Below, piece by piece: positions 51,226 through 55,833 of a DNA stretch of 64,000 nt (its first letter is position 1; each line of letters starts with the position of its first letter). The notes beneath the pieces are model-generated. The model worked only from the letters and a program-made list of their open reading frames with translations. It made no database searches and was not told the origin of the DNA. The translations under genes were made by a program, and so were the position numbers. Source of the DNA: Selaginella moellendorffii. Taxonomy: Eukaryota; Plantae; Lycopodiophyta. Where the stretch lies: contig NW_003314299.1 of assembly GCF_000143415.4 (NCBI RefSeq), positions 668,229 through 732,228 of the forward strand. The letters run 5' to 3'.

Positions 51226-54200
51226 ATGGCGTTGGAGGGGGCGGCGTTCTCTGGCGCCCTGGAGCTCAAGCTAGGGAATGCGGACTGGGAGCGGCGGTTC
51301 TTTGTCCTGATGGCGGCCTCTGGGGATCTGCTGTGCCTGCCAGGTGAGGATTCCACGTTTCGCGATGCGGAGGGCGTCATAAATGTCCGGGAGATGGAGC
51401 ATTTGGGGCAGTCTGGTGGCCTGGGCTTCGAGATCGTCGCGCTGGACGAGCAAGGGCAGCGGCAGAGGTATTTTCTGCGCGCGAACAGCGCTCACCAGTC
51501 GCAAGCGTGGTTGCAGCGCATCCAGGAATCCTGCGCCAAGTATGGTGTCAAAATATCGGTTGGTAGCACGAACTTTTTGCTTTTCTTTGTTTAAGTTTGA
51601 TCCAGTTTGCTTTCGTGGTCTTGTTCTATAGGTAGGAGAATGCTCTCTTCCAGCTCTTTGTTTTGCGTGGCTTGAGTTTTATCCTTCGTTTGTTGCTTAA
51701 GTTTGATCCTTTTTTTGTTCTATAGGTAGGAGAAAGCTCTCTTCCGGAGCTGGATGAAAGGCCTGCCGCTGCAACAAGGTGGAGAAACTTTTTTCTTCGT
51801 GCATGACTTCTTTCATTTCTAAGCTCAACTGGTAAACAATTTTGCATACGTACTGTTGAGGAAAGGCTGACAACTTGAACTTGGCAAGCAGTAAGGAACA
51901 TGGCATCAGCAGCACGGCATTGAATAAGTACGACAAAGAGAGGATTCAGTGCCAGTGCTACTTTCCCAGCGGAGACACCAGCGTTGTCATGTTCGTCCAA
52001 GGTATGAAAGGTTTTAATTCTCTCATGTTCGCTGTGGAGCTGCGTTTTAATCTCCAGGATCTGACTTGGTGCGCGACGTAAGAGATCGTCTCTTTATGAA
52101 CTGTGACGAGGCGGAGGAGGGGCATCTGGCGTCCGAGTACACGTTGAGACTGGTATAGCCCCACAACTTTTGACTGGTGTTCATGCGGGCTTTCAGGGTA
52201 GTCTCGGGATTTATCTGGATGCAAGCGAGGCGTGTAAATCTCGAATGTGCGATAGTACGTAAGTTTGTTGCCACGCTTTCCATTTTTGTTGCTTTCCATT
52301 CTTACAAGCTACTTGATTAACAGCTTCGTCCAGAGCTGCATTGACGAGAAGAAGCCTTTAGTTGTTCATCTAGTGCTGGACCCAGCTGTGTCAGGAGAGC
52401 CTCCAGCACCAGTATCACCCGTAACACAGAAAGCGGAGGCAAAGCTGAAATTCGAAGAGGTAGACATTCCGAGACTTCTGCTCATCATGATGCAGCCTCT
52501 CATTTTCAAGCTTTTACAGATTTCACATCAAAAGCCAGAGTTTTATGCAAAGGTACAAATTCAGTCCTATGAGAAAAACGTGGACAACGCACTTAAAATT
52601 TAGGCAGCCAAATCGTAAGTTCTTATTGCGGTTGTAAGCTCGTTTTCATTTTACGCCTTGTCTGTTGTCTAAGCAGCTCAGCTCACCGCTTCTTCGCAGA
52701 ACTTATCTGCATGTCCACGTTAAAGAATGCTGGTTCAAGGATGGCGTTTTCGAAGAAAGTGACGAAATGCTATACATGAATGTGATTGGAAGCTTGTATC
52801 CTTTTTGTTGGTCCTTACTCATTCTGTGACTTTAACTCGCGAAAAGATACCATGGTAGCCAGCGTCTAGCGACAAACTTGGAGCTGTCGACGACGTTTGT
52901 CGCACAGAGCATTAATCCTCAGTGGAACGAGATTCTGACATTTCCAATACTTCTTTTCGATCTTCCAGAGGTGCAGCTCATTTCACCATTTACTAACGTG
53001 ATAATTATTGTCTTTCATCAGGTAGCTTCTCTCAACTTTGCTGTCTACTCCGGGCATCAGAGGGACTGTCAACTGATCTCAAAGCTAGTCGGCTGGGCCA
53101 ATTATCGTTTTATTGATGATTATGGAACTGTTGATTCAAAGGTGAAACATCTCAGGTTGTGGAAAGATCCACCGTATTACACGTGTGGTAAGATATGTTG
53201 TTTTGTCCACGAATCCTGATCTCTCTACCTGCTGCTTTACAGGAACTGTGCCAGAAAATATATCGGAAGACTATATTGCTATTCTGGTCGTTTCACTTGA
53301 CGAATGCTTCTATCCTTTCAGCCTAAAGATGAGGGAAGACGAGGACGAAGGACAAGCAATGTTTACCAGTACGCTCGAAGATCCGGAGCTCTTTGTGTCG
53401 TATCTGAAAACATTTCTCCCACGTTTTGGGTTGTTGATAGGCGTCGTTTGACAAACTTTTCAGACGATTGTGACTTACTCCCAAGCACCGAAGAGAAGAA
53501 GCACATTGCTCTTTGCGTTGATAGTTATGGTATGTTTTGTGTTTGGCTTCACCCTTATTATCTTTTCTCTCATACCAGATGTTTTTTCTGTACCGTCGGA
53601 ACCACAAAAGTCGATCCTTTGGAGGTACCGTTATTCTATCAAGAACAATCCCAGAGCCTTGTCAAGGTTTCTGCAATCGGTCCCATGGCAAAAGTATATT
53701 TACGCTATGGAAGCACGAAGGCAAGCTGAAAAGTTATTTCGCACGTTGCTCAATACCATATCTTTCCAGGTTGCTGGCAAAATGGGAACCACTGGATCCA
53801 TACACAGCTTTACAGGTGTTTTCCAGAAAATCGCCTTGCATTGAATTTTTCTATTTGCACACATACAGCTACTTGGTCCGCAATTTGGAGATCCTGCTGT
53901 TCGTAACTACGCAGTCTCTGTACTGGAAAACCTTTCGAATGAGGAGATCTGCTCTTTCTTAGTGCAGCTAGTTCAGGTACACTTAAACCAAGCGTCATTA
54001 TTAGCTGAAGTTTTGTGTAACAGGCATTACATTACGAGCCACGGATAGAGTCCGCTCTTTTGCAATTCCTCGTCAACAAAGCTTCGGTGGACCAATCGCT
54101 CGGTTACTATTTGTACTGGCACATCAAGGTTTGGCATTTTGTCGTCGTTTTGTTTGTGGATATTGTGAATATTTAATCAATAGCATGTCGAACTTCTTTT

Positions 54201-55833
54201 AGGCCGGCTTGGAGGTTGCCTTCTTCGCAGTGAAGCTTCAGTTTGCAATGAATGAGTTCCGAAAGACTTGTAAGTCACACGTTATGACAGCTCTCTCGAA
54301 GCAAGAGAAGCTGGTACTCTCATTAGCCAACATTGCTCGTGGTATAAGGCAAGTCAAACAGAAGGCCGAGCGTCAGAAGCAACTTATCTCTTTGCTTTCG
54401 GAGCTCGAATCTTTTGAAAGCGTCGCGTTGCCGGTAGATCCCAGGTAACTGCTTAATTTTGTTTTTGTTCTCCCTTAGTTTAGTCTCCTCACATGGGAGA
54501 CGTGCCGATCACGTAGCTAACACGCATTGGATTCTTTTCAGGTGTGAGGTCAATGGCTTGGAACTGACGAAATGCAAGTACATGGATTCGAAAAAGCTTC
54601 CTCTCTGGCTGGTATTCAAGAACACGGACCGTAGTGTGGAAGAGCACACTTACATTATTTTCAAGACTGGCGACGACCTTCGTCAAGACATACTTACGCT
54701 GGAAATGTTTAGCCTCATGAACAAGGTGGGAGTCTCTCGATACCTCATGTTTTTTTTTCGAGTGCTTTTTTTCTCAGACATGGCTTAGGCACAACCTGGA
54801 TATGAAAATGACAATCTACAGTTGCGTCGCTACCGGCGATAGTAGTGGAATGCTACAAGTCGTCTGGAACTCGGAGACTTTATCCAACATCTGCAAGGTA
54901 GACATTAGTTTGATTGTTGCTTTTACATGTCTTCATTTTCTCTCGATTGTAACTACGATTTCGAAGGCTTCTGGCGGAGGAGTGGCTGTCTTCAAAGAGG
55001 ATACTCTTATCAACTGGCTCATGCATGAAACGCAGACTGGTGAGCTCTCAAGTCTATCGCCTGGGCTGTTAATGCGAAATGGCTTTTCCTGCAGGAGAAA
55101 ACTATAAAGGAGCACTGGATAACTTCACGAGATCTTGCGCTGGATATTGCGTTGCAACATGCTTGCTTGGGATAGGCGATCGGCATAACGATAATATCAT
55201 GCTCAAGAGAAACGGCCAGTTTTTTCGTACGTTCTCATCTCTTTTGTTTGCATCCAATCTTTGTTTTTTGTTTGCATCCATCTTTTCTCGTTCACGGGTG
55301 TTTCGTGCTTGTAGATATCGATTTCGGGCACATCTTGGGACATTTTAAGTCGAAGTTTGGCATCAAGAGGGAGCGTGCACGCTTCGTGGTATGAGACATC
55401 CAGCTTTGTTTTATCTTTCGTGTTTAAAAGCTGGATTTTTCTATGTGGTCTCAGCTGACGCCCGACATGGCGTTCGTGATGGGTGGCACACATGACCCTC
55501 GTTTCCGGTCGTTTGAGATACTCTGTGCTCAAGCCTTCAACCAAATTCGAGCAGAGGCTACAAAGTATCTTAATCTAATGTCTCTGGTATGGTGGCTGCT
55601 TTTGTTTAGACTTGTCCACCATAGTTTGTGAAAGTTTTACTCTTGCACAGATGATTTCTAGCGGACTGAGCGAAGTCTCCAGCCCCGCAGACGTCCGCTA
55701 CATGCACGACATAATGCTGCTCAACCTCTCGGACGAACACGCGGCCAAAGAGTTCACGAAATGGATCCACGACAGCCTCCACACGAAATCCACCCAGTTC
55801 AACCACGCAATCCACACTTGGGTCCACAAATAA
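51226..55833 (+). CDS. Class I-like phosphoinositide 3-kinase catalytic subunit with N-terminal PH domain (PH, RBD-like, C2, helical, kinase; many short introns)
   Basis: PH: [21 protein letters not shown]...[20 protein letters not shown]2: LYHG...[18 protein letters not shown]...[10 protein letters not shown]. Helical: LWRYRY...[13 protein letters not shown]...DPAVRNYAV...FLVQLVQAL. Kinase: [67 protein letters not shown]. Confidence 0.9.

Follow-up and report, generated by a model that had tools for sequence, protein, structure and literature searches.

A predicted class I-like phosphoinositide 3-kinase with an N-terminal PH domain in Selaginella moellendorffii and its relatives in a green alga and marine metagenomes

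Can a land plant carry a phosphoinositide 3-kinase (PI3K) other than Vps34? The class III enzyme Vps34 is the only PI3K usually credited to plants, and the textbook view holds that plants have nothing else and make no phosphatidylinositol 3,4,5-trisphosphate (PIP3). The question is raised by a gene of the lycophyte Selaginella moellendorffii (NCBI RefSeq assembly GCF_000143415.4, contig NW_003314299.1), which lies within the 64,000 nucleotides (nt) that we analyzed (positions 668,229 to 732,228 of the contig; hereafter the window, in whose numbering all coordinates are given). An earlier inspection of the letters (the sequence-only reading) had noticed a spliced gene at 51226-55833 with PH, Ras-binding-like, C2, helical and kinase regions, and had taken it for a class I-type PI3K with its own PH domain. 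We consider it likely that the gene is genuine, intact and part of the host's nuclear genome, that its product is a predicted catalytically competent class I/II PI3K of the lineage bearing a Ras-binding domain (RBD), and that it belongs to a vertically inherited, green-lineage family of PH domain-bearing PI3Ks (PH-PI3Ks).

The coding region (51226-55833; this gene and all of its features are on the + strand) was resolved into 25 exons and 24 introns. In our hand-curated model A, an uninterrupted frame of 2925 nt encodes 974 amino acids (aa) with no internal stops, and all introns are of the GT-AG type, with lengths of 44-167 nt (median 62). An in-frame TAA (51220-51222) lies ahead of the start ATG (51226), and the frame closes with the TAA at 55831-55833. 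Two automatic splice models, which read through introns or skipped exons, were too greedy and were discarded in favor of model A, whose junctions were set by hand according to the frame, the GT-AG consensus and the fit to homologues. A frame kept open through so many introns is not a product of chance. The coordinates of the sequence-only reading proved exact, and each of the domains that it named was detected.

Several details of the splice pattern have alternatives. Exon 1 (51226-51558) holds the entire PH domain. Exon 2 (51726-51778), an unconserved linker, was placed from frame and splice sites only, and its junction is the least certain one because direct repeats at 51587-51651 and 51693-51745 copy its acceptor and first bases within intron 1. 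This tandem duplication in intron 1 (51587-51745) has a period of ~94-106 nt and copies the acceptor together with some 20 bases at the start of exon 2 (TTGTTCTATAGGTAGGAGAA...); its upstream copy may provide an alternative acceptor. Between the RBD and C2 regions, a proposed 11-nt micro-exon (52604-52614; splice sites TTTAG/G and ATC/GTAAGT) restores the frame. A single intron with an acceptor 26 nt upstream of exon 9 would serve instead, and a profile of the clade described below does not tell the two apart (845.9 and 845.3 bits, respectively). Finally, the intron at 53694-53769 has two possible donors, located at 53694 (76 nt, model A) or at 53733 (37 nt, model B, adding 13 residues for a total of 987 aa). 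Model B closes a 10-column gap relative to homologues, and its score against the clade profile is higher by 9.3 bits. The candidate 37-nt intron (53733-53769) would be the shortest of the gene, the next being 44 nt, and it fits the homologues better than the canonical 76-nt option.

The predicted protein carries, in order, a PH domain, a Ras-binding-like module, and C2, helical and kinase domains. Pfam, PDB searches and AlphaFold were applied to single exons, and whole-protein comparisons were carried out on the spliced model. The PH domain (residues 6-105; 51241-51540) lies within exon 1, which scores 27.3 bits against Pfam PF00169 (cut-off 25.1). The AlphaFold model of this exon has a predicted local distance difference test score (pLDDT) of 92 and consists of seven strands and a C-terminal helix; in a Foldseek search, it most resembles the PH domains of GRP1, ARAP3, Akt and TAPP1. 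The RBD-like module (residues 135-235, exons 3-6; 51908-52375), which is split over four short exons, was scored not by Pfam but by a custom profile built from 13 Pfam-called PI3K_rbd segments. It reached 42 bits (E = 1.5e-11), whereas the best of 3000 shuffles reached 7.1 bits. The PI3K_C2 domain (approximately residues 297-409; 52755-53250) was called by Pfam on its exon open reading frame, with limits mapped from the Pfam coordinates of the homologues P0222, P0266 and P0026. The helical (PIK accessory) domain (approximately residues 455-626; 53481-54295) was likewise called by Pfam (PI3Ka) on an exon open reading frame and by alignments A2 and A4, and the PI3/PI4-kinase catalytic domain (residues 714-924; 54654-55680) by Pfam PI3_PI4_kinase on one exon (E = 4e-16). 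Aligned with full-length PI3Ks, the whole protein gives one colinear BLAST segment covering residues ~107-973 (E = 1e-171 to 1e-173). The clade profile matches the PH, RBD and C2-kinase parts in colinear order, scoring 846-855 bits over the full length.

Which class of PI3K does this protein resemble? The RBD-C2-helical-kinase core of class I p110 type is present in that order, and the catalytic elements are all intact, namely the ATP-site Lys motif (54654-54689), the DRH catalytic loop (55169-55201) and the DFG (as HIDFG). The DFG and the activation loop (residues 846-870; 55226-55388), which were compared with named class IA and protist sequences, are split by an 88-nt intron and include both basic boxes. 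Both motifs singled out by the sequence-only reading are there, the 13-residue motif at 54573-54611 and the 21-residue activation loop, in its intron-split form, within 55226-55388. Only 1 of the 21 loop positions differs from zebrafish p110beta (P0401), and an 11-residue stretch with the K-x-K and KRER boxes is identical to it. When the N-lobe exon was compared with the PDB, p110beta, delta, gamma and alpha were the top solved structures. The two basic boxes of the activation loop are present in class I enzymes, partial in class II, where the first box is lacking, and absent in Vps34, whose loop is short and proline-rich. In PI3Ks, the activation loop is held to determine substrate specificity (Bondeva 1998, cited in PMC3670040).

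Three other identities were rejected. Vps34 belongs to the same superfamily, with C2, helical and kinase domains, but is without an RBD or a PH domain; the RBD and the long basic loop of the Selaginella protein show that it is not Vps34. Class II (PI3K-C2) was set aside because the frame stops right after the last kinase helix, at 55831-55833, with no PX-C2 tail, and a PI4K identity was rejected as well. The adaptor-binding domain (PI3K_p85B, PF02192) was not found at the N-terminus, where the PH domain stands; among the matches of the homologue search, PF02192 occurs in animal class IA only. Taken on its sequence, the predicted protein is class I-like in every feature tested and departs from class IA in one structural feature, the adaptor-binding domain.

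In the databases, its closest relatives were found outside the land plants. An exhaustive representative search with the N-lobe exon led to protist and environmental sequences and to no others, the best of them 71% identical. A search from a Rhodelphis homologue led to PH-bearing PI3Ks, which became the best overall matches of the Selaginella protein; by Pfam, they consist of an N-terminal PH domain followed by RBD, C2, PIK and kinase domains. The last profile search, which used a cleaner alignment (A4), again gave no orthologue from a land plant. The PH exon alone gave no match as a query in a search whose candidates were limited to proteins of similar length. One cluster of relatives includes a Crustomastix stigmatica protein (EukProt EP00217), from a prasinophyte green alga; the long isoform of this protein opens with a classical PH domain and can be aligned over its whole length with the environmental proteins. 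Most other members of the clade also have an N-terminal PH domain, which was not Pfam-detectable in P0243, P0245 and P0029.

The environmental genes are located on TARA and other marine metagenome contigs, are intronless with ~62% GC, and have genes for an ABC1 kinase, YGGT/CCB3, TrpA and EF-Ts as neighbors. One marine scaffold has the EF-Ts gene beside the PH-PI3K; the Atlas clusters nearest to this EF-Ts belong to Chlorophyta and then Streptophyta, which is a lead and not proof. In two marine genomes, a divergent ABC1-family kinase gene lies just upstream of the PH-PI3K (L005, 8428-13966; L007, 5409-11720); the two PH-PI3Ks are only 59% identical, and the local gene order looks conserved.

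Phylogenetic trees gave a consistent grouping. With FastTree (156 rows), the Selaginella protein fell into a 14-row clade with Crustomastix and marine sequences at an SH-like support of 100. A quick IQ-TREE run on 55 rows recovered the clade with an SH-like approximate likelihood-ratio test (SH-aLRT) value of 98, and a careful run (LG+C20+F+G4; 55 rows, 695 columns) found it monophyletic with an ultrafast bootstrap (UFBoot) of 100 and an SH-aLRT of 98. In the careful tree, the Selaginella protein is the first branch within the clade, as expected for a streptophyte among chlorophytes, though its exact position there is unsure because its row is a long branch. Animal class IA and Capsaspora form a different, well-supported clade. 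The motifs CVATC, RERA[RK]FV, LLG[PS][RKQ][FY] and WI[HY][DE]SL occur together in the Selaginella protein and in 44 clade sequences, and not one of the four is present in 252 other PI3Ks, a count that is descriptive and no blind test because the motifs were picked after the alignment had been viewed.

Comparison with known systems places these results in order. Animal class IA p110 (e.g., p110beta) shares the RBD-C2-helical-kinase core, identical catalytic motifs and a near-identical activation loop, but has the adaptor-binding domain in place of the PH domain, is ~35-40% identical overall and lies in a separate clade. With this separate clade and no adaptor-binding domain, we do not read the predicted protein as an orthologue of animal class I. 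The earlier assignment to the class I p110 type, and not to Vps34, is largely upheld; it holds for the RBD, the loop and the PDB matches, but not as orthology to the animal enzymes. Dictyostelid and other amoebozoan PI3Ks, which are class I-like and Ras-regulated, share the core, the loop type and the lack of a p85-binding domain; they differ in their N-termini, which are long and of low complexity and stand in place of a PH domain, and they belong to a different clade. Crustomastix and the marine proteins P0222, P0225, P0266, P0223, P0226 and P0356 have the same domain order and the four private motifs, and they fall in the same clade. They are ~35% identical to the Selaginella protein overall, and differ from it in their intronless, GC-rich genes, their longer linkers (1113-1401 aa) and their basic PH domains, where that of Selaginella is acidic.

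Two records outside this comparison were also encountered. P0110, an NCBI record for Schistocerca gregaria annotated as PI3K 1-like, groups tightly with the environmental protists P0166 and P0016 and not with animal class I; this locust-labelled record may derive from a symbiont or contaminant. An Oomycota-rich Atlas cluster of 963-aa proteins has a PI3/PI4-kinase domain, with a PH domain in 43% of its members, and may represent an independent fusion of PH and lipid kinase.

The PH domain is shared with the relatives and yet altered. The Selaginella PH domain aligns with those of its relatives, with ten invariant positions, and since the PH fusion is common to the algal relatives, it is ancestral to the clade and no invention of Selaginella. 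The algal PH domains have an overall charge of +3 to +9 and a beta1-beta2 loop of +5 to +7, and in every algal member this loop reads as a phosphoinositide pocket (e.g., LRKKSPKG...WQxRYF). In Selaginella, by contrast, the net charge of the PH domain is -4, and the beta1-beta2 loop, shorter by five residues, is neutral. The domain is thus probably without canonical lipid binding. Membrane targeting driven by the PH domain, which the sequence-only reading had proposed, is doubtful because the domain is acidic and its beta1-beta2 loop neutral; the proposal fits the algal proteins better. The eroded loop is a caution against assuming simple membrane targeting.

As the sequence-only reading had suspected, an earlier survey had come across such a sequence. 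Philippon et al. (2015; PMC4617754) report a class I-type catalytic subunit in S. moellendorffii, the only species with a class I/II PI3K among the Archaeplastida that they searched, and their supplement lists gi 300148168 and 300148666 for it. They showed six neighbors of the Selaginella gene to be plant genes, excluded contamination, and left multiple loss or transfer as hypotheses for its origin. For bikont lineages, the same authors describe one class I/II copy that is undivided and of unknown function. The gene in the window is probably the same, matched by description, because theirs is the only archaeplastid class I/II sequence of that survey and has plant-gene neighbors. No mention of the PH domain, algal relatives or gene structure was found in the searched text and supplements of PMC4617754, and a literature search brought up no publication that deals with this PH domain, with the algal relatives or with enzyme activity. 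The sequence is therefore already known, and what our analysis adds is the green-lineage PH-PI3K clade, the N-terminal PH domain and the gene structure. The speculation that the gene has a role in flagellated sperm found no support here. Philippon et al. saw no such gene in any other archaeplastid, and a sequence of Physcomitrella, a moss with swimming sperm, stands in one of their supplementary alignment tables.

What might such an enzyme do? In the Selaginella protein, the PH domain stands where animal class IA has its adaptor-binding domain, and the enzyme would work without a p85-type subunit. With both basic boxes, it would probably convert phosphatidylinositol 4,5-bisphosphate (PI(4,5)P2) to PIP3 and would also phosphorylate less phosphorylated inositides. 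The RBD would receive its signal from a small GTPase, of which plants have the ROP, Rab and Arf types and no Ras. The acidic PH domain would serve more for regulation or protein binding than for anchoring to phosphoinositides. Extending this to the whole organism, it is hypothesized that a vascular land plant has kept a working PI(4,5)P2 3-kinase and makes PIP3 through an ancient green-lineage PH-PI3K already present in the ancestor of green plants, and that PIP3 signaling was lost repeatedly in plants and not absent from the outset. We put this forward tentatively and regard it as on the doubtful side. The gene is a concrete and intact exception to the textbook view, found in a species suited to laboratory cultivation, and since the residues for PI(4,5)P2 use in animal enzymes are all present, the question of PIP3 in land plants becomes a bench experiment.

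A number of points weigh against the account of an intact, vertically inherited PH-PI3K that makes PIP3. To our knowledge, PIP3 has never been detected in plants. The gene model, drawn from genomic sequence, has three doubtful junctions, namely those of exon 2, of the 11-nt micro-exon and of the intron of 37 or 76 nt. The branch of the Selaginella protein is long, at 1.7 substitutions per site, which calls for caution and may mean relaxed or changed constraint, and the usual basic pocket is absent from its PH domain. The trees were built without class II, class III or PI4K sequences, so that the class split is not placed by them. The after-the-fact choice of the four motifs belongs here too. 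Crustomastix is the only clade member with a species name, and its sequence is transcriptome-derived; for the marine contigs, the assignment to green algae is based on GC content, compactness and one language-model lead. No land-plant orthologue was found in database searches with exon, homologue and profile queries, which is a weak negative, as the spliced protein was not among the queries.

The most serious alternative accepts the gene and disputes the product. It holds that the enzyme behaves in a class II-like or ancestral manner, producing phosphatidylinositol 3-phosphate and/or phosphatidylinositol 3,4-bisphosphate from phosphatidylinositol and phosphatidylinositol 4-phosphate, and that the plant has no PIP3 pathway. 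Plants contain little PI(4,5)P2, and the lack of PIP3 detections agrees with such an enzyme. The protein does not appear to be an orthologue of animal class I, and its degenerate PH domain and long branch suggest a changed role. Against this, both class I basic boxes are kept in a loop that differs from p110beta at only one position, whereas class II lacks the first box; there is no PX-C2 tail; and Dictyostelium enzymes of the same general type do make PIP3. The undivided class I/II copy of bikont lineages, as described in PMC4617754, would suit an ancestral activity. We give this alternative substantial weight, as a real possibility that still falls short of being probable.

The second alternative concerns origin. 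We favor vertical inheritance within the green lineage, accompanied by many losses, because the protein forms a clade with Crustomastix and shares the N-terminal PH domain and four private motifs with it; most likely, the predicted PH-PI3K gene was inherited vertically and lost in most other plants. The gene could instead have come into the Selaginella lineage horizontally, its donor being an alga or protist with a PH-PI3K. The distribution is patchy, the land-plant searches above returned no orthologue, and transfer is one of the three hypotheses named in PMC4617754, whose authors found no other archaeplastid copy in 2015. The 24 spliceosomal introns are of host type, however, and the protein is basal in the clade and not nested within an algal subgroup, as a streptophyte/chlorophyte split predicts. 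The one named relative is, moreover, itself a green alga. Horizontal transfer is thus considered rather improbable. With the algal relatives, the evolutionary reading shifts toward a PH-PI3K that the green ancestor possessed and that was later widely lost.

A third alternative is that the gene is a silent relic, with an open frame from which expression or purifying selection has gone. The long terminal branch, the eroded lipid-binding loop of the PH domain and the intron 1 duplication copying the exon 2 acceptor would be in keeping with decay. The open 2925-nt frame across all introns, the intact catalytic motifs with their highly conserved activation loop and the full-length profile score of 846-855 bits all speak for a maintained gene, and we hold a relic to be very unlikely. 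Contaminant DNA or an assembly chimera from a protist is barely conceivable, even with nearest database relatives that are all protist or algal, given plant-type genes (PPR, LRRNT_2-LRR, MATE and Myb) on both sides on the same contig, very short host-like introns where the marine relatives are intronless, and the independent exclusion of contamination in PMC4617754.

The neighborhood that excludes contamination consists of two PPR genes, a leucine-rich repeat (LRR) protein with a plant LRRNT_2 cap, a MATE transporter, a Myb gene and a hybrid histidine kinase, and the introns of the PI3K gene are very short like those of the rest of the locus. The sequence-only reading had argued against contamination on the same grounds of plant neighbors and host-like short introns, and its argument is upheld. 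The hybrid histidine kinase corresponds to open reading frames at 5308-8659 with MASE1, HATPase_c and receiver domains, i.e., a bacterial-type sensor. Between gene-rich stretches of ~50% GC, a long AT-rich block (26000-42000; GC 27-42%) probably represents repeats or transposon remains. A cluster of AAACCCTA-like (telo-box) repeats at 56060-56140, just downstream of the PI3K stop codon, probably belongs to the promoter of the next gene.

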